A stretch of 64,000 bases of DNA from contig NW_021833418.1 of the NCBI RefSeq assembly GCF_006345805.1, positions 1-64,000 on the forward strand, read 5' to 3'. Positions 1 through 64,000 of this stretch are shown here, piece after piece; position 1 is the stretch's first letter; every line of letters begins with the position of its first letter. This DNA comes from Octopus sinensis (taxonomy: Eukaryota). Made by a program: the position numbers and the translations under genes. The notes beneath the pieces are model-generated. The model saw only the letters and a program-made list of their open reading frames with translations. It was not told the origin of the DNA and ran no database searches.

Positions 1-861
1 AAAAATACTTGAAGAAAATGAATTCACAGAAAACAAAATACTTCGACTTGCACCTTACAGTCCAATGTTAAATCCAATCGAACAAATATGGTCTAAAATG
101 AAAGCTTTTGTAAAAAGAAAAATGGCTGAAAATCTTGGGAATATCTTAGATGGAAATGAACCTGACTTGTCAAAAACAGAATTTCGGAAACAGAGATTGG
201 AGGATTTAATTAAACAATCGACTATCTATCGACTTTCCCGTTTGAGTTCGACAAGTCTCTGATATGGGATGCGACGTGTTCAGACACTTTCTCGGAGCTT
301 AATCTTCCTTCTTCAGCTGTCGAGGCTGGCTCAGTCTCTCGCAAAACCGAGAAGATGAAGATCGGAAAGTACAAGGAGCTCTCTGAACGATATCTGTTCA
401 CTCCTATCGCCGTCGAGACTTCCGTCGTCATTCCTTTTTGAAAAAGCTTGGCCGCATGATTTCCCATAAACGGGGAGACCCACGCGAGTCCAAGTGGCTT
501 CTCGAAAGGATTTCCTTGGCTATAGTACGTGGAAACTGTGTTTCCATTTACGAGGCCGGGAATTTAGTAAGTTAATAACTATTTTATTCTCTTTTTTTTC
601 TGGTATAAATGAAAATAGATATGATAATTAAACAATCTATGGACGAAGTTACTCCAAAGATTTGTGCTAAGTTAATAGCCAGAATCCAAGGACTATTGCC
701 TTCTTTATTAAATTACAAGGACGTAACATTTTAATTTTTTCGTTTGATATAAATGAGTCATCATTTTTTTCAAATATTTCAAAATTAACTTGGAAATCCC
801 ATATTGAATTTGGAAATTCCCACTTTGAACTTGGAAATCCCATATTGAACTTGGAAAGGTA
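1..861 (+). mobile_element. Tc1/IS630-family DNA transposon, right part (interrupted DDE transposase and right TIR)
   Basis: LAPYSPMLNPIEQIWSKMK motif. Right TIR ends ...TTGGAAAGGTA at 861 followed by TA. Full copy at 27821-29529. Confidence 0.9.
220..624 (+). mobile_element. 5'-truncated CRE-like non-LTR retrotransposon inserted in the Tc1 transposase
   Basis: Reads WDATCSDTF...KYKELSERYLFTPIAVETS...ISLAIVRGN (RLE endonuclease end). Flanked by the 13-bp direct repeat TAATTAAACAATC (207-219, 625-637). The transposase frame resumes after it (SMDEVTPK...). Confidence 0.85.
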
Positions 862-1399
862 TAGTATTGTCCATATTTTCTTAACATGAATCCGCCCCCT
901 TGTCTGAAGACTAAGCTATGGATAATGGATCTGGACAGTCGTGAGTTCGATTCCGAAGGAGGCTAGTTTTCATCCGGGGGTCAATTCTCGTTATCGTTCC
1001 CCTGCCCGTGAGGCAACGAGTACTTCTGGCACGACACAGTTGAAAAATGGGGATCTCTTACCTTCCTTCCGGTCTTAGCGTGGCGTATGGGGTCCACCAT
1101 GTCAGTTGGAACTTCCAATCGGATATGGCAACGCTCAGGAGGCACTTAATGCCCACCGAAAAAGGACTTCTAGATCTCAGACCCTGGGACATCGTCGTCT
1201 CAGGCCGTTCATGTGGGCAGGATCGAACCTTTCAGTAGTATCTCCCTCGCTTGAATCGGGAATCACGGGTATGTATAAATTTTTATTAAAACTGATAAAA
1301 TAATTAAATTTAAAGCAGCGTGATTTAATGCGTTAGGTGACACTTTCTATGGAAGAATTGGAAATTATCAGAGAATTCAAGTCCAATGAAGAGGACAAA

Positions 1400-2830
1400 T
1401 TCAAGTCCAATGACGGGCCCCTTGGGTACAGGGACAAATAGAAAGGTGTTTTCTGCATTAATTAATTTTAGATTTAATAAGAGTGTAAAAGGTTGGATTT
1501 CCTCCACCAGTGAATCAAAAAATTGTTTTGGACGTTATGTCAATATTATCAAAGATATTGTCGAGGATTATAATTACACTATTCACTCGACGACAAGGCA
1601 GATACCTTTCTTTCTGTTTATGGGAATCAAGAATTGCAATTCAGTCAGTGAAACACATCGAAAAGAGCTTATGGGGCATATAAGTCATATTATTTTTTAT
1701 TGGTCATATTGATGTTATTTCTATAATTAATAAACTATTATTATATTTTTTAATAGTTTTATTAATTTTTTTAGGTCTTATAGGTCATATTTTATGCCGT
1801 TAGGTCATATTATTTTTTAGGTCATATTTTTTTTGTTAGGTCATATTTATATTTATTAAATCATATATTTTTATTAATCTTTGTTTAAATTTTGACAATA
1901 ACACGTTTTCACACGTTTTGGTAGTTGGCCGCTTAAATATTATAGATTTTTACACGCCGAAACAAAAGCAATATAACAATCAAAAGTTAAATAAAATAAT
2001 TAAACGATACCCGTCTGAATTTCAGATTGATTCAGCTGGACGTTTATTTTGTTTGAAATGCTCAGTTTTTGTTAATTTTACGAAAACGTTTAATGTGGTG
2101 CAGCACAGGGAAACTACCCGGCATAAAAAGGAACAGACAAAATTTCAAACGCAACTCTTCTGAAACTTGAAGCAAAGAAAAATTTAGGAATTTGCTTAGT
2201 CGAAATGATGACGAAGGGGAATATACCTCTTTATAAAATAAGAAATGAACACTTTATTAACTTTTTTAATAATCTCGGATTTACTGTTCCCAGCGAAAGT
2301 TGGTGCAGAAATATAGTTCCAGATTTGCAATATCAATTGATTGAAATGCTTAAAACAATTATTTCTGGAAAAGATATATTCATACTTGTTGATGAAACGG
2401 AAATCAATAAACAGAAATTTAATATTTTTAAGTTATATTTTAGAATTTTAAAGTCATATTTTTTACGGTCATATTTAACTTTTTTAAGGTCATATTTCTG
2501 GTTGCCCTAGTGATGATACAGAAAAAGAGGATTTGGAAATGACAGTGATGACGAACTTGAGAAAAAGAGAAAGGAAGCTTTCAAAAACATTGTCTCTTGC
2601 GGTATAAAAATGAATAAAAAAAGAAAATGGAAAAACGATGAAGATAGGCCATCAGAAGGCGATCTTGTACTTCTACGTACAGATAATGACACCAATCGGC
2701 CAAGATATCCGTTATACGACGGAATTGATTCCAGCAAACACAAGATCATCAGTGTGAAAAACGATCAGTATTTTTTAAAGGGGGAAAATGGTGAGATTGT
2801 AGAAAATGTACACATCTCAAGACTTAAAAC
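1400..2830 (+). mobile_element. Degenerate retroviral-type integrase remnant, split by a hAT-like insertion
   Basis: IVEDYNYTIHSTTRQIPFFLFMG (end of integrase core, ~1560-1630). EGDLVLLR...VENVHISRLK (C-terminal SH3-like part, 2610-2830). Confidence 0.6.
1680..2509 (+). mobile_element. CGGBP1-like hAT element remnant
   Basis: Zinc-finger-like GRLFCLKCSVFV...QHRETTRHK and LVDETE. TAGGTCATATT subterminal repeats. Right end TGGTTGCCCTA is identical to the TIR of the element at 32400-33136. Left TIR not found. Confidence 0.65.
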
Positions 2831-2839
2831 AATTAAGAA

Positions 2840-3690
2840 ATGCCTTTCCTCGTTTGGAGTACGCACTTCTCCCTGTATCCGATTCCCGGATGCAGTCGGA
2901 GAATTCGATTCGCTGCTCAGGAATACTCTCGTTCAAATCTCAAACGTACATTTTGACGAAATGGGCTGGAAACAGGCTATCCTGCCTATCAGGCACGGGG
3001 CCGCAAAGGTCTACACCCGCTCTCCTGCCGCAAATGCCCTGGGAGGTTCCCCAGGCACGGACAGCTTAATTCCATAATAAAGCGTCTGCTCGAGGCAACC
3101 GGCATCCCGTGCCAGCTGGAGCCCTTTGGCCTTAACAGGGGCGATGGCATGAGGCCGGACGGCGTCTCGCTCTTCCCGTTCAAGTGCGGCAAAGCGATCG
3201 TCTGGGACGCGACATGCTCTGACACTTTTGCGTCAACATGCCTTCTCGCGTCCGCGATCGAAGCTGCCACAGCGGCGAGGAGGGCAGAGACCCGGAAGAA
3301 AGACAAGTACGCCTCGCTCGCCGACAGATTCCTCTTTGTGCCTGTTTCAGTCTAAACATCAGGCACATTCGGCCCAGCCACGCTACGTTTTCTCACCGAG
3401 AGAGGCCGTCACCTCGGGAGGATTAGATACGACCCCCGCGAGGTCAATCGGCTTTTTGAGCGCGTCTCAATAGCCGTACTCAGGGGGAACAGTTTCTCTA
3501 TTCTCTCTGCGGCTAGCAGCTGACTTCCTGTTCCATTATCTTTTCTATTTCGAAAAAAAAATTAAAAACCAAAAAAAGAAAAATATAAAAAAATTAAAAG
3601 AAAAAACAAAAAAATAAAGATAAAAAAAATAAAAAAAAAAAAAAAAAAAATTAAAAATAAAAAAACAAAAAAAGAAAAAAAAAGGAAATT
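2840..3690 (+). mobile_element. CRE-like non-LTR retrotransposon 3' fragment with A-rich tail
   Basis: WKQAILPIRHG; RPDGVSLFPFKCGKAIVWDATCSDT...KKDKY...FLFVPV; SIAVLRGN. A-rich tract at ~3550-3690. Confidence 0.8.
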
Positions 3691-3779
3691 AAAAAGGTGC
3701 AGGAAATGTAGGTAGTGTAGGCTTATGTAATGTCAGGGAAAATAAGATTAGTCATCAGTTGTCAGAAGATAATCAATCG

Positions 3780-4318
3780 ATTCGTCTCGATGAAAATAAG
3801 TTAAGTAAAGAGGTATTAATATTAGATTTATTTTTAGTGTATGGAAACGGATTACCTATTGAGAAACAAAGAATATTTGGAAAATACACAGGTTTTAGAT
3901 AATTTATGTAGCACGAAACGTAAAAAAGTTAGTGTAGAAAATAATAATTTTATACGATATAGTTTAGATGATATAAGTGTTAGTCTAGATAATAAATTTA
4001 AAATTAAAGTAAATAGTTCAAATGAGACGTTTTCGATCTCAAATTTTAGACGAGAAAAGAATAGATTGCGAATGGCTATGAAAAGGGCATCCGAGTCACA
4101 AGATCAAAAGGAACATCGACAAGAATGCAACAGATTAAGAGCAACTATAAGAAGGAGGCAAGAGACCGATGATATGAGGAATTTCAGAAAAGAACAAAAT
4201 AGGCGATAGAATAGGGTTACATTAAACCAGGTAGTTTTATACATCTACATAAACTTATAGTTGTTTGATGAAACAGGCCCTCCGCAGGAGCTAGGTCGCG
4301 GTGAGCGAAGCGAGCTAG
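3780..4318 (+). mobile_element. Possible non-autonomous Helitron remnant
   Basis: Charged RLRMAMKRASESQDQKEHRQ region resembles Helitron N-terminal repeats. GC-rich small hairpin ends in CTAG|T at 4315-4319. Confidence 0.4.
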
Positions 4319-4659
4319 TATTTTATAATTACTTAAAAGGTTCGCATTCAAAAAGATTATGGGACGAATCCTTCCTTGAGATTAACCAGGTTTGAACATC
4401 CATACGGGGATCCATTCACTATTGTTGCAAAATTGTCTAACAACTTTGTCAATGTGGAAAATAGTGATGGATCAGTAATGAAAGTACATGCCAAACGACT
4501 CAAGAAGTTAGATAACAGTCAGAAATAATAATTGTCCTTGATCTATCAATAAAATAAGTTATTTTGACATTGATTGAGTAAATTTGATTGGTCGCGTCTA
4601 GAGCTCGGTCGCTCGGCTCGCGACATAATATTTCGAATTGTTAGCAAAATTATATAAGA

Positions 4660-4850
4660 TTCAAATATCACAAAAGTATAAATAAGTAAAAAAGGAGATT
4701 AAAAGAAAAAAAATCGAAAAATATCACAAAAAATATAAATAATAAAAAAGGAGATTAAAGAAACAAGCTCGAAAAATATCACAAAAAGTATAAATAAGTA
4801 AAAAAAGGAGATTAAAGGAATAAAATCAAAAAATATTACAAAAATGATGA
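4660..4850. repeat. A-rich minisatellite, ~58-bp unit, about 3 copies
   Basis: Recurring AAATATCACAAAAAGTATAAATAAGTAAAAAAGGAGATTAAA. Also present at ~35780-35970. Confidence 0.8.
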
Positions 4851-5179
4851 ACTTTCAGATAATTAAATCATTAAAAGAAAATACATCTTGAATTATTCCT
4901 TCTGAATCCAATTAAGATAAAAAAATAAAGTGTAGCAAATAATTAAGAGAGCACCACAAGTAAATCAACAGCGTGCTCACACGTGTCTTAATTTATTAGG
5001 TATTAGGTTTACCATTTTAAAAATAAGATAATTAATAATAATTAATGAAAAAAACTTTATTTTTATTACAAAACAGTTTTGAATGTCAGTAATTCTCACC
5101 TTTAGAGAGAGCAAGGATCCAATAATAACCAGATTATTGAAAAAGGTTATTTAAAATCAATTAATCTTGGCTATAGCAA

Positions 5180-5320
5180 TTGGAAACTACTTCCGCCAAT
5201 TGAATGCTAAATTGGCAGCAAAGAGTGTATGCCCCCACCTCAGCTCAGAATTTGCTCCTTACCAACTCGGGGTGGGGATCGCCAACGGTTGCGAGTCCGA
5301 CATCGCCAATTTTTTTTTGT
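5180..5320 (+). mobile_element. CRE-like reverse transcriptase fragment
   Basis: LAAKSVCPHLSSEFAPYQLGVGIANGCE reading, typical of the CRE-clade RT region. Confidence 0.55.
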
Positions 5321-5699
5321 ATATCAATCCTCCCTGGTGACATAACTACCGAATTAGCAGTTATTTTGTTTTTTGCGGTGCAAGTGATTTCAATCTTCAT
5401 TGTTATTTCGAATTTGGTTGGAGCGATTTATGGTTTTATGCTTAAAAAGTTGAATATTTATATCATTTAATCTAAAAAAATATTGTTGTCACCACGCTTC
5501 GGAAAATAAGTGCAAAGTAACATATATTAGCAATAAAGTTTAACTCTGAAAAGAACACGTAATTATTAGTTATTCAATTTCCGTTTTTGTAATTTGTAGT
5601 ATTTTTTACATCAAACTCACCCTCTTAGGGCCCACGTATAATGCACCGATGGCCAGATTCATGTCAACGCAGAGTCTAGATTCAGGAACAAATGCCTAA

Positions 5700-6105
5700 G
5701 TGTCCCTAAAGTGGACCCGATCAAGTCCTCTTGAATGACCTACGAGCAAGGTGTGGAAAAATGGAAAACAATCATGACTTACGGAACCATAATGAAATAG
5801 TCAAATGTATCCATCTACACCTATGTAAAATCTATGGAATAGACAAGTCACAGGCTTTATTGATACAAGCGGAAGCTGAAAAGTCACAAGGCGACTTGTC
5901 GGTACTACAGACATCACATGTATTCTCCTAAGATTGAACCTTCTGTAGAGCCTATATCCAATCCGTCGTTCTGAGAAAGACTTTATTATGGCAGAAGCCT
6001 ATATCCAATCCGTCGTTCTGAGAAAGACTTTATTATGGCAGAAGCCTATATCCAATCCGTCGTTCTGAGAAAGACTTTATTATGGCAGAAGCCTATATCC
6101 AATCC
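5700..6105 (+). mobile_element. R4/Dong-like retrotransposon 3' fragments with a 47-bp tandem repeat
   Basis: RNHNEIVKCIHLHLC and AYIQSVVLRKTL match the C-terminus of the element at 42648-46185. 47-bp units start at 5950, 5997 and 6044, with a partial unit at 6091. Confidence 0.75.
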
Positions 6106-6340
6106 ATGTGAAGAAGACATTCAAAATAAAGAATGAACGACGAAAATCAACTTTAATTGACTTTTTCAGAGTAATTATATCCGTAATTAATAGTGGTTCT
6201 TTCCATTGACTTTTGTCAAGTATTTGATTCTTTAATACAATCTTCTCCTGAAGACAAAACAAATTAATGGTGTCTAAAGATTTTATAAATTGTGTGTTGT
6301 GTGTTTATTTAAATGGAATAAATAATATAGTCCTGGTGAT

Positions 6341-6931
6341 ATGTCGATTGTGCGACTGAAAAGTTGTGACGGTGAGATATTCCACGTACCCTATGACGTA
6401 ATATGCGTGTCGAACATGCTCAAGCGGATGTTGGATGGTAGTCCCCTGGCTGACCCCACTAGACCTGGGGATGATGAGTGAGGACGAGGCAGCCCTTCCT
6501 CTGCCAAATGTGACGGCAGGAATTCTGCGTCGAGTAGGTGAAGGGGGATATAGCTAGATCATAAACTGGTGTACGTATCACAAGGACGACCCAGTGCAGT
6601 CGGAGGCCACGAGTCGGTCGACGAGGACTGACGATATAATCCCCTACGACCTGGAATTCCTCAAAGTAGACCAATCCACGCTGTTTCGACTAATTTTGGT
6701 ATTTTGTGTGGCTGACGACAGGCTGCCAATTACTTGGATATTCAGCCTCTCCTGACGACGTGCTACAAGTACACTGCCAATATGATCAAGGGCAAGACGG
6801 CCGAGGAAATAAGAAGACACTTTAATATTAAAAATGACTTTACTCCCGAGGAGGAAGAACAAGTCACCCCTCCCTTCCATTCCTAGATTCGACGAGAAAA
6901 CAAATGGGCTGAATTTGATAAAAATTACTAA
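6341..6931 (+). CDS. SKP1: S-phase kinase-associated protein 1, 5 exons
   Basis: After removing GT-AG introns 6438-6462, 6534-6557, 6699-6721 and 6863-6886 (23-25 nt), it reads [14 protein letters not shown]...LPLPNV...AANYLDI...[33 protein letters not shown]. Confidence 0.95.
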
Positions 6932-7934
6932 TTTGTTGTCTTGTTTGTCTCCTTCATTCTCCGCTTGCCAAATAATCATAGTTTTAAGCCAATCAATTAG
7001 AAATCTGGGTATTTCCGATCATCAAATTTTTTTTTTAAAAATCAGATGTTCATATCCCAAATAGCTGAAGAGAAAGAACCACATACCATTCTAAAATTTG
7101 ACATAATAAAATTATTATTCGCGTGGATGTCACTACAGTTGTCTATATTCCACAGACAATATTTTGAACAATGATTATAGTTAACCCCGGGAAATTAACC
7201 ATTTAATTAATTTGAGTAAATATCGAATGGCGTCGTATTTTGAAGTTTGTTTAGTCATTGACATTTATTTTCCTTGTTTGCTTGGGAACCCTATTCTGTC
7301 TTATTATGTGAAATTGTTTATTTTCTGATCTGTCATTTGCTGCGTTCTTTTCTGCAGTTTTATAACTAAAACTTTCAACAATGATTTTGTAGTTATGAAA
7401 TCAAAGACAAAATTCTAAATTGCAACATAGTCAAAATTTCTTTTCAGAATAACCAATCGATATGATTCCAATAAATTATATTTAACGGACTCTGCCCTTT
7501 ATCTATAGGCCAACATGACGGGAGTAGTAAATGTCACGGACATCGAGAGGATGTCACAATTGTGGATGTTGTCGTAGATTGAAAACTATCACTCATGATT
7601 TAGACATAAATGAGGAATTAATGAGTATGGCTGCATTTAAAGGAAGACATGGTGCAGCACGACTATACTTAATTTTATAGCTATGTGAACAGTTCTACAA
7701 CTTATTTAACAAATTCACCTCAATTCATTATAATCTATACAAAAACAAAGAATCAACGATCAATATTATTGGTTTAATATTGTGGCTACATACTTGGTTC
7801 AGGTCGACAAAAGTTCTTGCTTTTCCTTTTTCTCATTGATAAACTTGTTAGAAGAAATGACTGCTAATTTAGTAAATTGATGTTTTCCGAATTGTCTATT
7901 GGCACAGAAATGGCGCAGGAGTAACGAAAGGATG

Positions 7935-7992
7935 CTAATTATGGGCAGATGTCTATTACAGTGTATATAACATGATGAGAAACATGACACTA
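7935..7992 (+). promoter_or_regulatory. Putative core promoter shared by the two peptide genes
   Basis: AATTATGGRCAGATGT, then TATATAA (7964-7970), then AGAAACATG. The same arrangement (TTTATAA at 8696-8702) precedes gene 2 with 22-23 nt spacing to the ATG. Confidence 0.5.
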
Positions 7993-8223
7993 ATGAAGTA
8001 TTTCCTGTTTATTGCATATGTTGCACTCGCATGCTCCAACATGGCAGGATTCGTTATTTATTTTTAGATACAAAACAAGACTGACGACACACAATCTCTC
8101 AAGGACAAACGAGCTTTAAGTTTTCTGGGGAAAATTTTTGGACCACTCATGAAAAAAATAACAGCACTTGGTAGAGGAAGTTCGGAATCTTCCGAAAGTC
8201 ATTGCCACGAGGAATATAACTAA
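7993..8223 (+). CDS. Secreted amphipathic peptide precursor 1 (antimicrobial/cytolytic-like), 68 aa
   Basis: Exon 7993-8043, 24-nt GC-AG intron 8044-8067, exon 8068-8223: MKYFLFIAYVALACSNM-IQNKTDDTQSLKDKR-ALSFLGKIFGPLMKKITAL-GR-GSSESSESHCHEEYN. The function is inferred from architecture. Confidence 0.75.
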
Positions 8224-8725
8224 CCTAATTCGTCTAACAATCTTATTTGTTCCTATATTTTCTGTTGTTTATTATCTTTTTAACGAACTTGATAAATTAA
8301 TTACTTGTATTAAGAAATCAAAGCGGATAGCGATATCTCTCACCACATCAAGGTAATTTTCTGTTCCAATTTTTTCCTGAAATAAACGCCCAGGTTTTAC
8401 AAATAAAATGTCGACAGTTTTTTTACCCAAAAAAAGACGTGATGAAACAAAACAAACGGTAATAAAGATGCACCTGATATACAATCTTAGATGGTGGAAT
8501 ATGCAGGAAGACAACTCAAATATAACCGTTGTGAATAAATGTGCACGCTGTGAAGAATGCGCACATTGAATAGTGAATGATAATGAGGAGTCTCTTTTAT
8601 TGAGTGTAACAGGCTGAATTAGTCAGTGCCGAGTGTACAAGCTAATTAGAGTTATAAATTATGGACAGATGTGTAACAAATGTGAACATTGTGCATTTAT
8701 AACATCGTTAGAACATGCGAGGGAA

Positions 8726-8919
8726 ATGAAGTATCTCATTCTGATCGCATGCATTGCAATGGCCTGTTCGAACATGGCATGATTCCGTACTTATCATCTT
8801 AGATTCAAGATGAGATTGAGGATAAACCAACTGTCAAAGAAAAACGAATTTTTGGGATATTTTCAATGCTGTGGGAGAAAATCAAAATGTTAAAAGATAA
8901 GATCTTTGGAAGACGATAG
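8726..8919 (+). CDS. Secreted amphipathic peptide precursor 2 (antimicrobial/cytolytic-like), 55 aa
   Basis: Exon 8726-8776, 26-nt GC-AG intron 8777-8802, exon 8803-8919: MKYLILIACIAMACSNM-IQDEIEDKPTVKEKR-IFGIFSMLWEKIKMLKDKIF-GRR-stop. Confidence 0.8.
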
Positions 8920-9037
8920 TAGTCGACAAATTTAATATACTAACCACTTTTCCTAAGCTTTAACACACTCATTTTATTCTTATTGTAATTAGAGTGGTTA
9001 TCCACTTGAACTTTTAATGACAATAAAATATATAGCA

Positions 9038-10565
9038 ATGAGTGTGTTGTGGACACGTTGTGTGCATCGTGAATTGGTGAGGAAAGTGGGGACAGGGAAC
9101 GTAGTACTGATAGACAGTGCACGGACTCCGTTCTGCAGGGCGGGGACAGACTTGAGAGACACAATGGGACATGAACTACAGAGCGCGGCGATAAGGAACG
9201 TGTTGAAGAAGACAGGAATAGGAAAAGGCAGGTGTGTGGGTAAAGTGTTAGAGGTGATCGAGTACGTGTGCGTGGGGACAGTAGTGCAAGAACCGAGAAC
9301 GCACAACATAGCGCGAGAAGTGGTGTGAGGTGTGAGAGTAGTAGTGTGTGCTGGGGGGAGGACTGTCAGTGCCGGGGCACACAGTGTCAATGGCGTGCAT
9401 ATCGTCGAACCAGGCAGTGGCGAGCATGGGGGAACTGATAAGGAGTGGGGCGTATAAAGCAGTGGTGGCCGGGGGAGTGGATATTATGTCGGACGTGCCC
9501 ATTCGCTACAACCGGACTCTGAGGAACACATGCTGGCCATGAACCAGGCCAAGAACAAATATATGAGGGCGCTGTGATGGCTGTGAGGCTACTGGACCCC
9601 ACTCAAGTGCTCAGTCCAGAGGTGGGGACGAGTGTGATATGGTAGCTGCCGGGGGTGGCCGAGTTCTCCACAGGGGAGACCATGGGACACTCGGCAGATC
9701 GACTGGCTGCAGCCTTTTCCATATCGAGGGAGGAGCAGGTGAGGACTGCTGTCGTGTTGTAGGACTGGTACGCCCACCGTTCCCACTCACTCGCAGCTAA
9801 GGCACAGGCGGAGAGGGCAACTGACGGACGTGCACGCGTATCAGAGTATGTCCATCTCCCCATGTCTTATAGCCAAGTCCACACTCACACCTGTGACAAT
9901 GGAGTCAGAGTGACCCCACTCGAACAACTGGCCACTCTCCCCCCCTCCTTCGTCAGGCCACACGGCACTGTCACTCCTGCCAACTCCTCCTTTCTCACCG
10001 ACGGGGCCTCGCCTGTCTCTCATGGCAGAGGACAGGGCATTGCAACTCGGACTCACTCCCAAAGCATATCTCCGCCAATATACTTTTTCTGCACAGGACC
10101 CCAAAGACGAGTTGTTGATGGGGTTCCTCCACTCACTCACTCTAGACCCGCCTACTCCATTCCACGCCTCCTCCACTCAACACGACTCCAATGGCCGACA
10201 TTGACGTTTTTGAGATACACGAGGCCTTTGCTGTACACATTCACATCACCCTTAGGGACAAGTTCTCGCCAATCTTAAGGACACTCTCTTCCGATTATTT
10301 CTGTCGGAGAGCCCACAACATGTCCAATGTAGTCTTTCTTCTCATGTAGGTTGGAAATATCCCCATTGATAAATTGAATTTGTGGGGGGGCTCCCTCTCC
10401 ATTGGACACCGTTCGGGGCCACCGGAGTCAGATTGCTTGCACATGCCGCCAACAGATTGATTGACGAGGACGGCACCTTCGCTTTGCTCTCTTCTGTGCT
10501 GCGGGGGGAACAAGTAAGCCACTTTCTCATTGTAGGGACATGCCATGTTGCTCGAGCGATATTAA
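9038..10565 (+). pseudogene. HADHB: 3-ketoacyl-CoA thiolase (trifunctional enzyme beta type), frameshifted copy
   Basis: Same gene as 40295-41826 but with multiple small indels (e.g. GAGGAACAC vs GAGGAAACAC, CTCCAATGG vs CTCCAATTGG, GGACACCGT vs GGACACCCGT). May be sequencing error rather than a pseudogene. Confidence 0.7.
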
Positions 10566-10699
10566 CCTACTCTCTAACATGTCTCACGTTTCCAATTAAC
10601 AGATTGTATTACGAATAGGGCAATAGGAGTTGTTAGGACTTGTCCAATATTAGTCAAGGTGAGAGTAAAGGTGGTGAGTAGAAACTAATCTGGCTGTGG

Positions 10700-10800
10700 A
10701 CTCAACTGTTCCTGAAGGACTCACAAAAGCTTACATTCAGTCGGTGGTTATGTGGAGAACATTGGAGAATATGCGTGCAGAAGATACGTTTGGAATAATC
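10700..10800 (+). mobile_element. R4/Dong-like retroelement C-terminal fragment
   Basis: KAYIQSVVMWRTLENM resembles RTYIQSVVLKRTLESM in ORF 42694..43134. Confidence 0.55.
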
Positions 10801-11479
10801 CAGCCGGAAGAATGCCTAATGGCTTGGTTCATAAATGGAACAAGCTTTGCCGAGTGTGCCCATCGAACTGAGAATGACCGCAGAGTCCAGCTCTGGCTTG
10901 AAGAGGAAGTAAATCGACTGAGAGCAAGCGCATTAATCACTCTTATTATTTCCCCTCTTCTGTACTTTTCTTTGTCACCCAACAGACCACACAACAAGGC
11001 AGATAAGTCGGTGAGAACATACTGGGTACAAATATACTGACAAATCAAATGGATAAATGCAGCCGCAAACATTACTTCACAGCTGCGCCAAATAAACTAA
11101 ATAAACCATTGCGTGTACGTGGAATTCAAACTCCCTTGGCGAAAGAGTCGGCATAGGTGACGTCCAAAACAAGCGCTTCTCGAAGCGTACAACTCGTCGG
11201 TTCTAGAACTGAGGGAAACCAGATTTTCCAGAGCTTTATGAATTAGGTTGATACTGCTTATCTAGAAATAAGTTGCCAGGGCATCAAAAGAGTGCGAAAG
11301 AAACAATTAACCAGCCCTAAGTCTTATATTCATAGTGGAATAAAAATGAAATATGTCGGAAATAAACCGTCAGATCGAATTCTATACATTTAAATTACTC
11401 TCAAAAAGGAACAGAGCGTAATTAGAAGGTAATTCTCTGTCTATTATGAGAAAAAAATGCCAAAATACAAATGTAATTC

Positions 11480-16630: not shown

Positions 16631-18793
16631 TACTTAAACCTTTCTATATTGCCACGAAAAAAAACCAAATATTTCATGGCAATAAGCAGGGTGGAATTAT
16701 AACGCGACCCCGCTAAAATTAATTAAACACAAAATATTTATTAAAAAACTCCTTAATCGTTGACTGTCTACAACTATTTTTTAGACAATTCCGATATTCC
16801 TTTTTAATATGTTTAATATATTGTAAGTTTTTTTCCCACATCCTTTGAGTAAACTCGATCCCGGCAGTATAACTTCAAACGCATAAGCCATTTCATTTTT
16901 AGGCCTTTTTTAATAAAGTTTTCTTTTATGTATTCTTCATCACTGTCATTGATTCTTTGAAGTGTAGACAATATTTGGTCTTCTTTAATTAAACCGATGC
17001 ATTCATCCATTTGAATATTTGAAATTTATAATTCCTAAATCGTTTCCAAATTTTTTTGCTTGTTATTCAAAACAATGTTTTGAAACCTTTTGATCTAGTG
17101 CTGAGAGCGATCTATCAATGTAAATGATTGTCAAAAATAAAAATAATCTATTACATCAAAGTTAACTAAGGTCAATTATTGACAATTAATAAATGATAAT
17201 TAAACATTATTTCTCGACAAATTTTTTTAATCGAAGAGAAAGATTCGTCCCATCTTTTGTACACGAACCTTTAAGTAATAAAAATAGAATACAATATGAG
17301 AAAAGCATACAGGATCTCATTGGCCATCATGCGCGGGAATTGCCAGTCGATCCGCTGCGCATTTTAAACCTTTTCACTTTCTCCATTAGTATAAACAAAT
17401 TCGAATACAATATCTCCAACATCTAACTCATATTTGATCGATGGACTCCCATCTTCCATTCATTCTTCTATAATATGAAGACTGCAAATTCATCCTCTCA
17501 AATTAAACTGGCACTCATCATCTTTACTAATAAATAACAATAAAAAACCTTTATTATAAATGTCGGGATTTTCGAAACTTCAAATTCTTCATATCAAAAC
17601 TTTTCGGTTTCGTCAACACTGATTCAACAACAAGATGTTGATTCCAGGAATGGACTAACGCCTAGAAAATTAACAAATGCAATTTACATGAATGAGCACT
17701 CAGATTGTACAAAAACACAGCTTTTCGAATGTGTTTTATCCACTCTTTTTATCATCCGGAGTTATCAATTTGTATAAACTTCTTGTGATCGTCTGATTAA
17801 ATCTTTCAACTATCCCCTGACTCTGGGGATTGTTGGGTCGTCCATGAATTTTGACAATTTTATACTCTTGACAGAGTTTTCTTATATGGTCATTCTTGAA
17901 CTCCGGACCATTGTCTGACTGCAAGTATTTACAAGGCCCGTGATCAATAAAAATTTCTTTTAACTTATTGGCAACTTCTCTTCTACTTTTGTTCAGTAGG
18001 TTCCCGGTGAATTCATATCTCGACTAGACGTCAATCACAGTCAACAACCAAGAAAATTGATCATTGTCATTTTCAAACCTTGGCAATAACACAATTTTAT
18101 ACCTTTATAGGTCAATCAGATCAATTTGAAATCTCTCATTCGGTACATCCGCAAAAATATGACTTACGTCGTCATATTGTTTCAGCGGACCTGCAGACTG
18201 GCATATATCACAGTCTCTTACCACCTGACGAATAACATCTCTTTTAACAAAACAAAATCGTTTTCCACACAATTCTTCGAGTGCATTGTGTCCATAATGG
18301 TTAGCGTCGTGGATATCTTCTGCAATTGTCCACATCTCAGGTTTGTTGGTTGAGGCAATAACAAGTTTGTGATTAGATAAATAATCTTGAAGATAGACCT
18401 TTCCGTCTATTAAAACGAATTTTTCAGCCTTCTTTTTTAGTTTGTACTTCCGAGAAGTTGAGATGTTCAGGTCTTGTCCTTCGAGGATAAATTTTATAAT
18501 GTTGTACTCTTCATTATTTTTTATGAAAACTTTGTTAGAAATCAGAACAACGTGATTAGTGAAATAGTTTATTGAGTTTATTGTCAAAAATTATGGTATG
18601 CCAGCAAAAATTGGTGTAAATCTTAAATAAAAGTAAAATAATTTAAAAATTTGAATGGCGTTATATCGGATAAGGCACATAATTGGCGTGGCAATAACTG
18701 AGTGGCGGGATTTGGCATTATAAAGAGAAATTCAAAGAAGAACCAAAAAATGACGTGGCAATAAGCGGCGTGGCATTATAGAGAGGTTAAGTG
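16631..18793 (-). mobile_element. TA-flanked TIR element carrying a degenerate zinc-finger/rve integrase (KRBA2/SCAND3-like)
   Basis: Imperfect ~26-bp TIRs TACTTAAACCTTTCTATATTGCCACG / revcomp CACTTAACCTCTCTATAATGCCACG. HDANHYGH..CDICQ, RFQIDLIDL, LQSDNGPEFKN, GRPNNPQSQGIVERFNQT. Confidence 0.75.
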
Positions 18794-19372
18794 TATTTGG
18801 TATTTGATTCTGGTTAACGGAATAGTTGAAAATTTTCGTCACTGCATCATTCCGATGGGACCAAGCTGCTTTAGCAAGGTTGTTGGAATCAGATCTGGTC
18901 CACAGGATAGGGATGATTTTGCAGGGGATATCTTGTAAATGTAAAAAGTGAAAAACTCACGTGTGGGAATATAAATTTTACTGTTAATGCTCTTACGGGA
19001 TGTGCTACAATATTCATTGGGTTAAGTGAAAAACTCACAGTAAAAACTACATCTAAATTAGAAAAATACAAACTTATAAAAAAAGAATTAATTTATAATT
19101 GATGACGGCATATTTTCTATTCCTAATTCAATCTTTATCCAAAGAACTAGAATAACTAAAAACACAAATTAATTAGTTATTTAGACAATGAAATTAAGAT
19201 GAAAACACTCGAATTCGCTATTCACAAGAATGCCGCCAGAGAATATAAAAACTTCATAAGAAATGTAGTAAATTTCTTTTTACTGCGAAACGCTTAATTA
19301 TTGAATGAATTATAAAAGACTGGGAAATTTGTAAATTTGCCGAGCCGCTAAAAAAATTTTTAAATAAATATA

Positions 19373-20937
19373 CAGTAAAGTCTCTCGAATACGCCGACTC
19401 TCGAATCCGCCAATTATAATTAATAAATTCTCTTATCCGCCATTTTTCCTAGAAAAAATTCTCGAATCCGCCATATTTTTTATAATGAATCCGCCATGTG
19501 TCCTAATTTTAAATAATTTTTTTAATTAAATTTACTGATATATAATCAATTTATTAACACGTTACATCTGTCTTTGTTGTTGTATTAATGAAACGTAACT
19601 GTACAAGACTAAAAAACAATCAAAAAATTGAGATTTTGAAGTTTATTCAAACAAATAATGAATTATCTTCACTAAAAATTTCTGAGATTTTTTCAAAAAA
19701 ATACAACTTGCCTGTTTCTCGCCGATCTATTGATGATCTGAAAAGTAAAAGAGGATCTAACATTATGTTTCATAACCTAAGATCTGACATTTCCCGCAAA
19801 CAATATTTAAAGTTTGCTGAAATCGATGATAATACTATTGCTTGGGTCAATTCAATGGATCTTAAAGGAGCCATTTTAAATGATAGGATTATTACTGAGA
19901 AAGCAAAAGCCTTTGCATTGAATCTCGGGATTACTGAATTCAAAGGAAGCAAAGGGTGGTTAGTTAAATTTAAAAAGAGGAATGGTTTGAAATTACGCAA
20001 TATGCATGGAGAATCTGCAACTCCAAATTTTGACCCTAATTTAGTATCAGATTTCATTGAATTAATCAAAAATAAAATCAGTCTTTACGGAGCTCAAAAT
20101 GTTTATAATGCCGATGAAACTGGCTTATTTTACAAAATGATACCGTCTAAGAGTGTTTGTAAAACCATTAAATCTGGCTATAAAGTCCTGAAAGACAGAG
20201 TTTCTGTTATGTTATGTAGAAATGTTGACGGTACAGATAAGCGAACATTCTTACTAATTGGGTTGTTTAAAAATCCAAGATGTTTCAAGAATTTCGATAT
20301 CAAAAAATATGTTATATATTCAAATTCAAAGAGAGCATGGATGGATAGCAGAATTTTTAATCAATTTCTATTAAAATGGGAAATGGAATTGCGAAAACAA
20401 GATAGAAAAATTTTGTTTGTTGTAGATCAATCTCCTGCACATAAGGTGAATTTCATGAAATTTACATTAGGTATTGATTGAATTAAAACAAATTGAGATG
20501 TTATTTCTACCACCTAATACAACATCTTTTTTACAGCCCATGGATCAGGGCATAATTAAATCGTATAAATGTAAATTCAATTCTCTAAAATTTTCTAATA
20601 TAATTCAAAAAATTGAAGCTGGGACAAACCCCTATGTTGTTACCATTAACGAGGCTTTTATCGCTTTAAACAAATTAAAAGAGTTCTATAATCAAGAAGA
20701 ATTCTTTAATATAGAAAATCTTGAGTATATTGAAAACATTGGATCTTCAATGATCCAAACTCTAAGAAGAAACAAGTCGAAACTTACTGATTTTTTTGTT
20801 TTTAATTAATTATTTTGGCTTAATAATTTAAATTATTAATGGATTTAAAAATCGATAAGTCTCTCGAATCCGCCAAATTCTCGAATCCGCCAGATTTTGC
20901 CGATCCCCGAAATTGGCGGATTCGAGAGACTTTACTG
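19373..20937 (+). mobile_element. Tigger/pogo DNA transposon (1565 bp)
   Basis: TIRs CAGTAAAGTCTCTCGAATACGCC / GGCGGATTCGAGAGACTTTACTG, TA target duplication, transposase inside. Confidence 0.95.
19588..20809 (+). CDS. Tigger transposase (HTH, CENP-B HTH, DDE_1) with one 25-nt intron
   Basis: FKGSKGWLVKFKKR, YNADETGLFY, KDRVSVML, LFVVDQSPAH. Removing GT-AG 20446-20470 joins the two ORFs (HK/VLIELKQIEMLFLPPNTTSFLQPMDQGII). The C-terminal part looks shortened. Confidence 0.8.
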
Positions 20938-27820: not shown

Positions 27821-29529
27821 TACCTTTCCAAGTTCAAAGTGGGATTTTCCAAATTCAATATGGGATTTCCAAGTTCAAGGATTTTCAAGTCGGTTATTGA
27901 ATTCATTTATTAATTTAAAATCGCCTTACATTACAAAATGTACGTTAATAAAAAGAAAGAATTAGCTAAAAAAATAAAAAATTTGTTGACCGTTTACGAA
28001 AATGATGGGGATTGGAATCAAGTTGCATGTTCTCTCGGAATAAAAAGAACAACTGCATACAGGTGGATAAAAGAAGGCTTTAATGATGATTTAAGAGGTG
28101 GTTTTCGATATTCAAAAATTTCAAATACCGTACGAGATTATATGCAAGAAATGGTCGAGTCAAATCCGAAAATTACTTGCAAACAATTGGCTGCAGAGAT
28201 CCAAGATAAGTACGGAATAAAAGTGTCAGGTGAGTGCGTTCGCCTGCATCTTGATTCGCTTATGTATACCATAAAAACATAAGATTCGAACCTGAAAAAA
28301 GCAACTCAATGGAGAACAAAGAGAAGCGCAAAAGATTTTGTGAAAAGCTGCTTGGTTATTAAGCAATGGAAATTCCGATTCTTTTTATGGACGAATCCAA
28401 CTTTAATTTACACATATCAAGAAAACAAGAGAGGTCGAAAAAGGGGCAGCGATGTAATACACGTGCAGCTTCATCTAAAAAAGCTAACATTCATGTTATC
28501 GGTTGCATCGGTACAAAAGGGGTAATACACTTTGAAATACGAAGAGGATCCTTTAATAAACAAACTGCGTATGATTGGATTAAAGCATGCTTTAAAAAAG
28601 CATATGAAGTTTATCTAAGTCCAGTAGTTTTAATAATTGACAATGCTCCATGTCATACAGACATTGAAAAAATACTTGAAGAAAATGAATTCACAGAAAA
28701 CAAAATACTTCGACTTGCACCTTACAGTCCAATGTTAAATCCAATCGAACAAATATGGTCTAAAATGAAAGCTTTTGTAAAAAGAAAAATGACTGAAAAT
28801 CTTGGGAATATCTTAGATGGAAATGAACCTGACTTGTCAAAAACAGAATTTCGGAAACAGAGATTGGAGGATTTAATTAAACAATCGACTATCTATCGAC
28901 TTTCCCGTTTGAGTTCGGCAAGTCTCTGATATGGGATGTGACGTGTTCAGACACTTTCTCGGAGCTTAATCTTCCTTCTTCAGCTGTCGAGGCTGGCTCA
29001 GTCTCTCGCAAAACCGAGAAGATGAAGATCGGAAAGTACAAGGAGCTCTCTGAACGATATCTGTTCACTCCTATCGCCGTCGAGACTTCCGTCGTCATTC
29101 CTTTTTGAAAAAGCTTGGCCGCATGATTTCCCATAAACGGGGAGACCCACGTAAGTCCAAGTGGCTTATCGAAAAGATTTTCTTGTCTATAGTACGTGGA
29201 AACTGTGTTTCCATTTACGAGGCCGGGAATTTAGTAAGTTAATAACTATTTTATTCTCTTTTTTTTCTGGTATAAATGAAAATAGATATGATAATTAAAC
29301 AATCTATGGACGAAGTTACTCCAAAGATTTGTGCTAAGTTAATAGCCAGAATCCAAGGACCATTGCCTTCTTTATTAAATTACAAAGACGTAACATTTTA
29401 ATTTTTTTTTTTGATATAAATGAGTCATGATTTTTTTTCAAATATTTCAAAATTAACTTGGAAATCCCATATTGAATTTGGAAATTCCCACTTTGAACTT
29501 GGAAATCCCATATTGAACTTGGAAAGGTA
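27821..29529 (+). mobile_element. Tc1/IS630-family transposon, both TIRs present, transposase disrupted
   Basis: TIRs start TACCTTTCCAAGTTCAA, contain internal ~20-bp repeats and are flanked by TA. HTH ORF 27938..28282, DDE ORF 28366..28929 (FMDESNF, IIDNAPCH, PYSPMLNPIE). CRE insertion 28887-29291 with TSD TAATTAAACAATC. Confidence 0.93.
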
Positions 29530-32399
29530 TAGTATTGTCCATATTTTCTTAACATGAATCCGCCCCCTTGTCTGAAGACTAAGCTATGGATAATGGATCT
29601 GGACAGTCGTGAGTGTGATTCCGAAGGAGGCTAGTTTTCATCCGGGGGTCAATTCTCGTTATCGTTCCCCTGCCCGTGAGGCAACGAGTACTTCTGGCAC
29701 GACACAGTTGAAAAATGGGGATCTCTTACCTTCCTTCCGGTCTTAGCGTGGCGTTATGGGGTCCACCATGTCAGTTGGAACTTCCAATCGGATATGGCAA
29801 CGCTCAGGAGGCACTTAATGCCTACCGAAAAAGGACTTCTAGATCTCAGACCCTGGGACATCGTCGTCTCAGGCCGTTCATGTGGGCAGGATCGAACCTT
29901 TCAGTAGTATCTCCCTCGCTTGAATCGGGAATCACGGGTATGTATAAATTTTTATTAAAACTGATAAAATAATTAAATTTAAAGCAGCGTGATTTAATGC
30001 GTTAGGTGACACTTTCTATGGAAGAATTGGAAATTATCAGAGAATTCAAGTCCAATGAAGAGGACAAATTCAAGTCCAATGACGGGCCCCTTGGGTACAG
30101 GGACAAATAGAAAGGTGTTTTCTGCATTAATTAATTTTAGATTTAATAAGAGTGTAAAAGGTTGGATTTCCTCCACCAGTGAATCAAAAAATTGTTTTGG
30201 ACGTTATGTCAATATTATCAAAGATATTGTCGAGGATTATAATTACACTATTCACTCGACGACAAGGCAGATACCTTTCTTTCTGTTTATGGGAATCAAG
30301 AATTGCAATTCAGTCAGTGAAACACATCGAAAAGAGCTTATGGGGCATATAAGTCATATTATTTTTTATTGGTCATATTGATGTTATTTCTATAATTAAT
30401 AAACTATTATTATATTTTTTAATAGTTTTATTAATTTTTTTAGGTCTTATAGGTCATATTTTATGCCGTTAGGTCATATTATTTTTTAGGTCATATTTTT
30501 TTTGTTAGGTCATATTTATATTTATTAAATCATATATTTTTATTAATCTTTGTTTAAATTTTGACAATAACACGTTTTCACACGTTTTGGTAGTTGGCCG
30601 CTTAAATATTATAGATTTTTACACGCCGAAACAAAAGCAATATAACAATCAAAAGTTAAATAAAATAATTAAACGATACCCGTCTGAATTTCAGATTGAT
30701 TCAGCTGGACGTTTATTTTGTTTGAAATGCTCAGTTTTTGTTAATTTTACGAAAACGTTTAATGTGGTGCAGCACAGGGAAACTACCCGGCATAAAAAGG
30801 AACAGACAAAATTTCAAACGCAACTCTTCTGAAACTTGAAGCAAAGAAAAATTTAGGAATTTGCTTAGTCGAAATGATGACGAAGGGGAATATACCTCTT
30901 TATAAAATAAGAAATGAACACTTTATTAACTTTTTTAATAATCTCGGATTTACTGTTCCCAGCGAAAGTTGGTGCAGAAATATAGTTCCAGATTTGCAAT
31001 ATCAATTGATTGAAATGCTTAAAACAATTATTTCTGGAAAAGATATATTCATACTTGTTGATGAAACGGAAATCAATAAACAGAAATTTAATATTTTTAA
31101 GTTATATTTTAGAATTTTAAAGTCATATTTTTTACGGTCATATTTAACTTTTTTAAGGTCATATTTCTGGTTGCCCTAGTGATGATACAGAAAAAGAGGA
31201 TTTGGAAATGACAGTGATGACGAACTTGAGAAAAAGAGAAAGGAAGCTTTCAAAAACATTGTCTCTTGCGGTATAAAAATGAATAAAAAAAGAAAATGGA
31301 AAAACGATGAAGATAGGCCATCAGAAGGCGATCTTGTACTTCTACGTACAGATAATGACACCAATCGGCCAAGATATCCGTTATACGACGGAATTGATTC
31401 CAGCAAACACAAGATCATCAGTGTGAAAAACGATCAGTATTTTTTAAAGGGGGAAAATGGTGAGATTGTAGAAAATGTACACATCTCAAGACTTAAAACA
31501 ATTAAGAAATGCCTTTCCTCGTTTGGAGTACGCACTTCTCCCTGTATCCGATTCCCGGATGCAGTCGGAGAATTCGATTCGCTGCTCAGGAATACTCTCG
31601 TTCAAATCTCAAACGTACATTTTGACGAAATGGGCTGGAAACAGGCTATCCTGCCTATCAGGCACGGGGCCGCAAAGGTCTACACCCGCTCTCCTGCCGC
31701 AAATGCCCTGGGAGGTTCCCCAGGCACGGACAGCTTAATTCCATAATAAAGCGTCTGCTCGAGGCAACCGGCATCCCGTGCCAGCTGGAGCCCTTTGGCC
31801 TTAACAGGGGCGATGGCATGAGGCCGGACGGCGTCTCGCTCTTCCCGTTCAAGTGCGGCAAAGCGATCGTCTGGGACGCGACATGCTCTGACACTTTTGC
31901 GTCAACATGCCTTCTCGCGTCCGCGATCGAAGCTGCCACAGCGGCGAGGAGGGCAGAGACCCGGAAGAAAGACAAGTACGCCTCGCTCGCCGACAGATTC
32001 CTCTTTGTGCCTGTTTCAGTCTAAACATCAGGCACATTCGGCCCAGCCACGCTACGTTTTCTCACCGAGAGAGGCCGTCACCTCGGGAGGATTAGATACG
32101 ACCCCCGCGAGGTCAATCGGCTTTTTGAGCGCGTCTCAATAGCCGTACTCAGGGGAACAGTTTCTCTATTCTCTCTGCGGCTAGCAGCTGACTTCCTGTT
32201 CCATTTTCTTTTCTATTTCGAAAAAAAAATTAAAAACCAAAAAAAGAAAAATATAAAAAAATTAAAAAGAAAAAACAAAAAAATAAAGATAAAAAAAATA
32301 AAAAAACAAAAAAAGAAAAAAAAAGGAAATTAAAAAGGTGCAGGAAATGTAGGTAGTGTAGGCTTATGTAATGTCAGGGAAAATAAGATTAGTCATCAG

Positions 32400-33136: not shown

Positions 33137-33376
33137 GTCATCAGTTGTCAGAAGATAATCAATCGACTCGTCTCGATGAAAACAAATTAAGTAAAGAGGT
33201 ATTAATATTAGATTTATATTTAGTGTATGGAAACGGATTACCTATTGAGAAACAAAGAATATTTGGAAAATACACAGGTTTTAGATAATTTATGTAGCAC
33301 GAAACGTAAAAATGTTAGTGTAGGAAATAATAATTTTAAACGATATAGTTTCGATGATATAAGTGTTAGTCTAGAT

Positions 33377-39249: not shown

Positions 39250-39480
39250 ATGAAGTATTTCCTGTTTATTGCATATGTTGCACTCGCATGCTCCAACATG
39301 GCAGGATTCGTTATTTATTTTTAGATACAAAACAAGACTGACGACACACCATCTCTCAAGGACAAACGAGCTTTAAGTTTTCTGGGGAAAATTTTTGGAC
39401 CACTCATGAAAAAAATAACAGCACTTGGTAGAGGAAGTTCGGAATCTTCCGAAAGTCATTGCCACGAGGAATATAACTGA
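39250..39480 (+). CDS. Secreted amphipathic peptide precursor 1, duplicate
   Basis: Intron 39301-39324. Same protein as 7993-8223 except Q>P in the propiece; stop TAA>TGA. Confidence 0.75.
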
Positions 39481-63921: not shown

Positions 63922-64000
63922 TTTTTTATTTTCATTCACTCATTCTTTATATTCAAGCGACTTCCCCAGACATCACTCTTTGCTCTCCCGTCATATATGC

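Follow-up and report, generated by a model that had tools for sequence, protein, structure and literature searches.

How can a peptide precursor be expressed when its reading frame is closed by a stop codon immediately after the leader, and which intron would take that stop away? This is the question raised by a small locus at positions 8726-8919 of the DNA analyzed here. This DNA, which we call the window, comprises the first 64,000 nucleotides (nt) of contig NW_021833418.1, deposited under Octopus sinensis (RefSeq assembly GCF_006345805.1) and read on the forward strand. The locus, named here gene 2, lies downstream of a paralogue, gene 1, and had been described in an initial annotation as the precursor of an amidated helical peptide whose expression needs a GC splice donor. 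We propose, with about even confidence, that the two tandem paralogues encode secreted prepropeptides and that gene 2 is spliced via a GC-AG intron to yield an amidated amphipathic peptide.

Organization of gene 2

Gene 2 consists of the following parts, the last line giving the element that follows it:

8726-8776, forward strand: exon 1, with the ATG at 8726 and a 17-codon, signal-peptide-like hydrophobic leader MKYLILIACIAMACSNM
8777-8802, forward strand: favored intron (model A), GC..TAG, 26 nt, holding the in-frame TGA; productive
8803-8847, forward strand: propiece IQDEIEDKPTVKEKR, 15 residues, the last two being the dibasic site Lys-Arg
8848-8907, forward strand: predicted mature peptide IFGIFSMLWEKIKMLKDKIF, 20 residues
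8908-8922, forward strand: Gly-Arg-Arg, a putative amidation and carboxypeptidase signal, then TAG TAG (8917-8922), as read in the sequence
9022-9027, forward strand: AATAAA, a likely polyadenylation signal, 100 nt past the gene 2 stop and 11 nt ahead of the ATG of the thiolase gene (9039)

The leader has a grand average of hydropathy (GRAVY) of 1.63. When gene 2 is read without splicing, GCA TGA follows at 8777-8782, right after exon 1, with the TGA at 8780-8782. The segment 8777-8802, GCATGATTCCGTACTTATCATCTTAG, is 26 nt long and has the boundaries GC..AG. Beyond it, exon 2 (8803-8916) is shifted by +2 in frame and reads IQDEIEDKPTVKEKR / IFGIFSMLWEKIKMLKDKIF / GRR. Since the two frames of gene 2 are offset, joining them requires the excision of a segment with a length not divisible by three.

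The initial annotation was accurate in its description of the locus: the coordinates, the translation, the Lys-Arg site and the immediate in-frame TGA (GCA TGA) all match the sequence, and the end of the precursor at Gly-Arg-Arg followed by a double TAG can be read directly. The composition that it gave for the 20-residue peptide (4 Lys, 1 Glu and 1 Asp) is also correct, and so is the placing of hydrophobic residues at positions 1, 2, 4, 5, 8, 9, 12, 15 and 19.

Two other kinds of reading frame were considered at the peptide locus and rejected. An open reading frame in the +1 frame, starting from the ATG at 8810, lacks the leader, and the same frame is closed in gene 1. On the reverse strand, no open reading frame exceeds 40 codons. 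As a separate observation, the AATAAA at 9022 on the 3' side of gene 2 overlaps a TATA-like element of the thiolase gene.

A paralogue with the same layout and a common upstream motif

Gene 1 and the upstream elements of gene 2 are placed as follows:

7993-8223, forward strand: gene 1, the paralogue, 730 nt upstream of gene 2 and with the same layout
7993-8043, forward strand: exon 1 of gene 1, with the 17-codon leader MKYFLFIAYVALACSNM
8044-8067, forward strand: GC..TAG segment of gene 1, 24 nt, which aligns with the 26-nt segment of gene 2
8053-8079, forward strand: alternative intron of gene 1, GT..AAG, 27 nt
to 8220, forward strand: exon 2 of gene 1, IQNKTDDTQSLKDKR / ALSFLGKIFGPLMKKITAL / GRG SSESSESHCHEEYN
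8656-8672, forward strand: upstream motif AAATTATGGACAGATGT (consensus TAATTATGGRCAGATGT), a putative promoter element common to all four peptide genes, i.e., genes 1 and 2 and the second copy of each (see below)
8698-8702, forward strand: TATAA, a putative promoter element, 24 nt before the gene 2 ATG

The paralogues share 72% nucleotide identity and have leaders (17 codons) and propieces (15 codons) of the same lengths. Across the propieces, IQDEIEDKPTVKEKR in gene 2 and IQNKTDDTQSLKDKR in gene 1, the residues I, Q and D and the K-x-K-R end are conserved, and the Gly-Arg after the helix is also kept. What follows differs, being Gly-Arg-Gly with the acidic tail SSESSESHCHEEYN in gene 1 and Gly-Arg-Arg in gene 2. 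The mature peptides themselves have little sequence in common, but an amphipathic periodicity is common to both. By the Nei-Gojobori method, the ratio of nonsynonymous to synonymous substitution rates (dN/dS) between gene 2 and gene 1 is 0.10 in the leader, with proportions of synonymous and nonsynonymous differences (pS and pN) of 0.69 and 0.17, respectively, and 0.44 in the propiece. Thus, the frames on both sides of the proposed intron behave as coding.

The upstream motif TAATTATGGRCAGATGT is matched four times with no more than one mismatch, once per peptide gene and always 54-70 nt upstream of the ATG (7936-7952, 8656-8672, 39193-39209 and 39913-39929). Elsewhere there is a single match, with three mismatches, and the chance expectation is 0.32 matches. 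Within the motif, gene 1 carries TAATTA and gene 2 AAATTA; TAATTA is the core of homeodomain-type binding sites, and such a core may drive cell-type-specific expression of the peptide genes.

Gene 1 has a TATATAA at the same distance from its ATG as the TATAA of gene 2, and the neighboring Hsp110 gene has TATATATAG about 31 nt before its ATG, in the same geometry as the peptide genes. TATA-like elements (at 8698, 7964, 50641, about 9028 and about 6320) were found 10-31 nt upstream of the start codons in all the genes inspected. Their closeness to the start codons suggests very short 5' leaders in this genome.

Conservation of gene 2 between duplicated blocks

Positions 1-10840 of the window are repeated at 28668-42102, and each peptide gene is thus present twice, about 31 kb apart. 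The two copies of this block of about 10.8 kb are 97-99% identical; the second copy contains extra inserts, and about 18 kb of transposon-rich DNA lies between them. The second copies of the peptide genes are the following:

39983-40176, forward strand: second copy of gene 2, identical in sequence
39250-39480, forward strand: second copy of gene 1, differing at two sites (propiece Gln replaced by Pro, stop TAA replaced by TGA)

Between the block copies, none of the 194 nt of gene 2 differs, while 40 sites do so in the 1353 nt around it (P = 0.002). When the coding sequences of both peptide genes are taken together, 2 differences are found and 12.6 are expected (P = 5e-5). The identical run around gene 2 (8655-8954, 300 nt) is the longest in its block, extending from the promoter motif to 32 nt past the second TAG. 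By these results, gene 2 is probably a real gene that evolves under constraint. Both copies contain the TGA at 8780, which is thus older than the block duplication, with no decay of the gene since; the simplest reading is that this TGA would not form part of the mature gene 2 mRNA.

Could the frames and motifs at this locus be chance features of AT-rich intergenic DNA upstream of the thiolase gene, with no gene at all? The frames are indeed short, they have no database match, and the splice signals are weak. We nevertheless consider this highly improbable: the paralogues, at 72% nucleotide identity, agree in their segment lengths and processing sites and have dN/dS values far below 1, the upstream motif and the TATA element are common to both, and the conservation between the duplicated blocks is specific to the peptide-gene units. 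Gene 2 is, then, very probably a real gene for a leader, a propiece ending in Lys-Arg, an amphipathic helix of 20 residues and a Gly-Arg-Arg end.

Other long identical runs between the block copies also coincide with genes, namely 1155-3482 and Skp1 at 6347-6949. The non-coding divergence is uneven along the block, with about 0.8-1.3 differing sites per 100 nt in positions 1-6000 vs. 2.4-4.2% near the peptide genes. The two copies of the HADHB-like thiolase gene (9039-10600 and 40296-41860) are set apart by at least 12 indels of a single base, located at short homopolymers. Copy A has several frameshifts, and copy B has one or more, among them that due to an additional T at 41450. These indels reflect either pseudogenization after the duplication or indel errors of the assembly.

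Introns of the neighboring genes

We curated by hand 27 introns in five neighboring genes (Hsp110, PI-PLC, Skp1, thiolase and PH+START). The guides were human HSPA4 and HADHB sequences (tblastn) and, for PI-PLC, Skp1 and PH+START, conserved motifs. The PI-PLC junction 63232-63257, with a GAG acceptor, was left out of the set, as a one-base assembly error would account for it just as well. A minimum-intron path search allowing introns of 18-45 nt was also tried; it produced wrong gene models, and the homology-guided manual curation was used instead.

The curated introns measure 21-27 nt (mean 24.0, n = 27), and the 26 nt of the intron proposed in the initial annotation are therefore a normal size for this genome, although they would be wildly implausible in an arthropod. 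All 27 donors are GT, with A preferred at +3 (15/27). The acceptors are TAG in 17 cases, CAG in 9 and AAG in one, the PI-PLC intron 62864-62886, and A is enriched at -7 and -8. After splicing, the products match Pfam domains that run unbroken over the junctions, such as PI-PLC-X (positions 1-143 of 144) and HSP70 (1-396), as well as both Skp1 domains, Thiolase_N, PH and START.

The same genes bear on how TGA is read. Hsp110 ends in MDID-TGA, and the human HSPA4 guide sequence has the same last four residues. Copy B of gene 1 ends with TGA too. These two stops indicate that TGA is a genuine stop in this genome, and its use as a sense codon in gene 2 was therefore ruled out.

To our knowledge, dicyemids and myxobolid myxozoans are the only animals for which introns so short have been reported. 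The introns of Dicyema acuticephalum measure 26.2 +/- 1.9 nt (PMC2222250) and those of Dicyema sp. have a median of 27 nt (PMC6543705), while the medians of myxobolids lie at 22-27 nt and their splice logos consist of no more than "GTa" and "AG" (PMC13644364). The range of 21-27 nt found here thus points to a dicyemid or a myxobolid myxozoan, and not to an arthropod, as the source of the locus. The window is transposon-rich with about 38% GC, which fits the 36.7% GC and 49% repeats of Dicyema japonicum (PMC6736024) but does not speak against a myxobolid.

Proposed GC-AG splicing and its canonical alternatives

All the donor/acceptor pairs of gene 1 and gene 2 were enumerated. Besides the GC-AG intron, two canonical introns have to be weighed in gene 2:

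8766-8809, forward strand: canonical intron (model D), GT..AAG, 44 nt; productive
8787-8809, forward strand: competing canonical intron, GTACTT...TTCAAG, 23 nt, in frame, keeping the TGA as codon 19; non-productive

The options of gene 1 are the GC intron 8044-8067 (24 nt; model A), the GT intron 8053-8079 (27 nt; model B) and one GT-AG intron of 15 nt, which is shorter than any intron seen in the curated genes and was discarded. Only in the GC-AG model are both paralogues productive at the same position and in the same phase. For this reason, we favor the GC-AG intron 8777-8802 over the canonical options and would give it roughly an even chance of being the one used. Its lengths in the two genes (26 and 24 nt) fall within the curated range, its TAG acceptors are of the commonest type (17/27), and the A at +3 also fits the curated pattern; the GC donor does not.

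The claim of the initial annotation that the only internal GT would keep the stop cannot be maintained. There are two GTs upstream of the acceptor, and the one at 8766 gives an intact precursor. What holds of the proposed need for a GC-AG intron is the removal of the TGA by an ultrashort intron, and what does not hold is the strict requirement for GC, as the 44-nt GT-AG intron would serve too. The precursor spliced in that way would read MKYLILIACIAMA-Y-EIEDKPTVKEKR-IFGIF...GRR and would contain the same mature peptide. Its junction is ...IAMA|YEIEDKPTVKEKR, so that the signal peptide would end in IAMA and be followed by YEIEDK....

A splice score, combining donor and acceptor position weights with a length model, was built from the 27 curated introns. 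Model A scored +0.4 bits in gene 1 and -1.1 bits in gene 2. Model B, with its GT..AAG introns, scored -5.7 bits in gene 1 and +1.7 bits in gene 2, where it corresponds to 8787-8809 and keeps the TGA. The 44-nt intron of model D, an option that gene 1 does not offer, scored -7.8 bits. The leave-one-out scores of the real introns range from -0.4 to 13.5, and 38 decoys inside the Hsp110 exons score at least 1.7. Since decoys score as high as real introns, the splice score cannot rank the models, a lack of power that echoes the minimal splice signals published for these animals.

The same genes and the same mature peptides would also result from canonical GT-AG splicing, through 8053-8079 (27 nt) in gene 1, giving ...CSNMAGF|TDDTQSLKDKR, and 8766-8809 (44 nt) in gene 2. 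All the curated introns are GT-AG, both of these solutions are in frame and free of stops, and the signal peptide of gene 2 would end in A-M-A, a textbook signal-peptidase site. The AAG acceptor is seen once in the curated set (PI-PLC, 62864-62886), and in dicyemid gene predictions about a third of the introns are at least 30 nt long (PMC6543705). However, neither the position nor the phase of the intron would then agree between the paralogues. Gene 1 has no GT at the equivalent of 8766, and 44 nt exceeds every curated intron. Both acceptors would be of the rare AAG type (1/27), the donor of gene 1 (TTC|GTTATT) has the least favored bases at -1 and +3, and the two introns score -5.7 and -7.8 bits, compared with +0.4 and -1.1 for GC-AG. 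We regard canonical splicing to the same peptides as possible, though unlikely.

A different outcome would follow if GT 8787 were joined to AG 8809. The TGA would then stay in frame at codon 19, gene 2 would be dead or non-productive, and only gene 1 would make a peptide. This 23-nt intron has the best splice score among the gene 2 candidates (+1.7 bits), its GT lies within one base of the position of the canonical GT donor of gene 1, and gene 1 reads GGA where gene 2 reads TGA. The conservation of gene 2 speaks against such a loss, since the gene with its promoter forms the longest identical run between the block copies (0 of 194 nt differing, P = 0.002), while the neighboring thiolase gained many frameshifting indels over the same period. 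The downstream frame of 38 codons, the Lys-Arg site, the Gly-Arg-Arg end and the amphipathic pattern are all intact, and the TGA, present in both copies and hence in place before the duplication, has not been followed by decay. A non-productive gene 2 appears decidedly improbable.

As a rough estimate, we would assign about half of the weight to GC-AG splicing, a minor share to canonical splicing with the same peptide, a smaller share to a non-productive gene 2, and the rest to other possibilities.

Properties and proposed maturation of the peptides

The helical hydrophobic moment of the gene 2 peptide (Fauchere-Pliska scale, 100 degrees) is 0.517, compared with a shuffle mean of 0.254 (p = 0.033); the initial annotation, which had named a low moment as evidence against its proposal, is in this respect borne out. 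The gene 1 peptide has a moment of 0.558 (shuffle p = 0.002), and in both peptides the maximum over all the angles is reached at 100 degrees. The mean hydrophobicity of the gene 2 peptide is 0.76 and its GRAVY 0.66. If amidated, the gene 2 peptide would have a net charge of +3 and the gene 1 peptide of +4, and thus both combine the high helical moment and the net positive charge of amphipathic membrane-active helices. The motifs of the secreted amidated class, i.e., a leader, a basic site before the peptide and C-terminal Gly and basic residues, are also present. An AlphaFold2 single-sequence model of the gene 2 exon 2 product shows one helix at residues 11-34, with a mean predicted local distance difference test (pLDDT) score of 87-92 over residues 11-30, and lends the helix weak support because it was built without an alignment.

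According to these motifs, maturation could proceed as follows. If gene 2 is transcribed, a productive mRNA would require the removal of an ultrashort intron with the in-frame TGA, most likely the 26-nt GC-AG intron 8777-8802. The hydrophobic leader of 17 residues would direct the precursor into the secretory pathway and be cut by signal peptidase, and a subtilisin-type convertase would cleave after the Lys-Arg at the end of the 15-residue propiece. A carboxypeptidase would then trim both C-terminal Arg residues, and the exposed Gly would be converted into the C-terminal amide, giving IFGIFSMLWEKIKMLKDKIF-NH2, with an expected monoisotopic mass of 2485.399 Da. This hydrophobic, net-positive product may form an amphipathic helix on membranes and act there like an antimicrobial or cytolytic peptide. 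The bioactivity and the amidation are thus predicted from motifs. The window encodes no prohormone convertase, carboxypeptidase or peptidylglycine amidating enzyme, and a literature search for them gave nothing.

Alternatively, the same amidated peptide might be an intercellular signal, similar to a hormone or neuropeptide, that acts at a receptor and not on membranes. Dibasic cleavage and Gly-directed amidation are the classic neuropeptide route, and rhodopsin-family receptors, closest in resemblance to neuropeptide receptors, have reportedly been retained in dicyemids (PMC6543705). Against this role, the paralogous peptides have a common periodicity and little common sequence, as is usual for membrane-active peptides but not for receptor ligands. 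The hydrophobicity is very high (mean 0.76, GRAVY 0.66), each precursor holds one peptide, and there is no relative in other animals. A conserved leader together with a divergent, yet amphipathic, mature part argues for membrane activity, and we consider the signaling role rather unlikely.

The sequence searches returned no homologue. This was the result of a word-indexed search of 5.8 billion clusters with both precursors and of a HMMER profile of the two exon 2 products run against 1.84 billion representatives. Four splice variants of both precursors matched no peptide family in Pfam-A at E-values up to 10, the single row, BRCA2_TR2 (E = 0.19), being a chance one. Neither a PDB search with the precursors nor a scan of metagenome contigs for the peptide genes gave any match, and the same was true of a full-text literature search for the peptide strings. 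The peptide genes appear to be an orphan family of a familiar kind that does not detectably belong to any known family.

Several points weigh against the proposed splicing and function. GC donors are absent from the 27 curated introns, and the donor context after the GC (ATG|GCATGA) is weak. Each gene has a canonical option, 44 nt long in gene 2 and 27 nt long in gene 1. The non-productive GT intron 8787-8809 scores slightly above the GC intron on the crude splice model, and this model cannot tell real introns from decoys inside exons. The shuffle p of the gene 2 moment is 0.03, and gene conversion could be an alternative cause of the identity of the copies. Finally, as no database holds a homologue, the function is predicted from the logic of the motifs.

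Other features of the window

The Hsp110-type gene (50672-53268) contains 11 introns, each 22-26 nt long. On its coding strand, the 5' half is rich in G and the 3' half in C, a local composition to which the introns conform; a 36-nt repeat (53163-53246) forms a tail rich in TNTE/DVP before the conserved MDID end. The Skp1 gene (6330-6950 and 37250-37870) is intact, with four introns of 23-25 nt and identical block copies. The PI-PLC gene, with X and Y boxes, occupies 62500-64000 and runs off the end of the window; its junction at 63232-63257 would work only with a GAG acceptor or after the correction of a single base.

In the coding region of the PH+START gene, which encodes a CERT-like lipid-transfer protein, a near-perfect 48-nt tandem repeat (56266-56748; 10.1 copies, 98% matches) encodes VDYSEDCPYRGDITAQ ten times. 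A perfect 47-nt repeat of 3.3 copies lies at 5949-6105. Transposon remnants spanning 18105-20809, 27938-28929 and 43974-45955 comprise a gypsy-like integrase fragment, pogo/Tc5 and Tc1/mariner transposases, and a reverse transcriptase of the long interspersed nuclear element (LINE) type. An Rfam scan of the whole window gave no match. In protein searches, eight open reading frames were absent from a collection of 15 billion proteins, a transposase open reading frame had no record, and a 229-residue Hsp110 query gave no hit at E <= 1e-20, a threshold that was probably too strict.

Implications

The broader proposal, which we put forward tentatively and regard as doubtful, is that a reduced parasite without nerves or organs, either dicyemid or myxobolid, makes lineage-specific secreted amidated amphipathic peptides, with both paralogues spliced through a conserved GC-AG intron of 24-26 nt. 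In the literature, we found no report of such peptides from dicyemids or myxobolids. If the proposal is true, the minimal spliceosome of these animals tolerates a donor other than GT, and does so in an intron that hardly exceeds the spliceosome footprint. Apart from GT..AG, ultrashort introns contain next to no signal, and a conserved GC-AG micro-intron would thus be a useful natural test of how the spliceosome reads them.

Should they be expressed, the peptides would be the first candidates for membrane-active or amidated secreted peptides in an animal group known chiefly for its gene losses. They would open a way to study how such parasites cope with host cells or microbes in their niche, and would provide a test of whether the machinery for peptide processing and amidation survives in a body without neurons. 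There is also a practical consequence, as annotation pipelines that bar introns shorter than 30 nt or non-GT donors will miss genes of this kind, and public protein sets hold nothing similar. The chief interest of the locus would lie in an ultra-reduced parasite with 24-nt introns, rather than in arthropod venom.

Comparison with known systems

The candidate intron of gene 2 has the GC..AG boundaries of U2-type GC-AG introns, at the same position in both paralogues. GC-AG introns usually compensate for their donor by a near-perfect match to the rest of the donor consensus. The context in the peptide genes (ATG|GCATGA or ATG|GCAGGA) is, in contrast, weak by the general animal consensus. In size, the 26 nt of gene 2 and the 24 nt of gene 1 fit the values given for the ultrashort introns of dicyemids and myxobolids (PMC2222250; PMC13644364), and the proposed intron also resembles these in its YAG acceptor and in an A placed 7-8 nt before the acceptor. 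It differs from them in its first bases, as the published logos and the 27 curated introns start with GT and the proposed intron with GC.

Regarding the peptides, the initial annotation had suggested a comparison with the venom helices of scorpions and ants. As to the source, this was misplaced, the introns pointing to a dicyemid or a myxobolid, and no sequence relationship was found. The non-disulfide-bridged peptides of scorpions and the helical peptides of ant and bee venoms are likewise short, amphipathic and often amidated, with Gly-Arg-Arg or Gly-Lys-Arg after the peptide, and the acidic C-terminal tail that follows Gly-Arg in gene 1 resembles those of scorpion precursors. However, in scorpion precursors the signal is directly followed by the mature peptide and the propiece stands at the C-terminal end, while the only propiece of gene 2 is N-terminal. 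The peptide genes show no detectable homology to these venom peptides, and their genome context is not that of an arthropod (PMC13644364).

The linear cationic amphipathic peptides of amphibian skin and of spiders (latarcins, cupiennins), which serve in host defense or cytolysis, differ from those described here in having no sequence similarity to them (Pfam, PDB and two large protein collections). The propiece of gene 2 is also just 15 residues long and has no net acidic charge, and the peptide genes would come from an ultra-reduced parasite with 24-nt introns, not from a vertebrate or an arthropod. The order of the parts is nevertheless the same as in gene 2, i.e., signal, charged propiece, basic site, helix of about 20 residues, and Gly with basic residues. 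In the peptide genes, as in the amphibian and spider precursors, the leader is conserved and the mature part diverges fast between paralogues.

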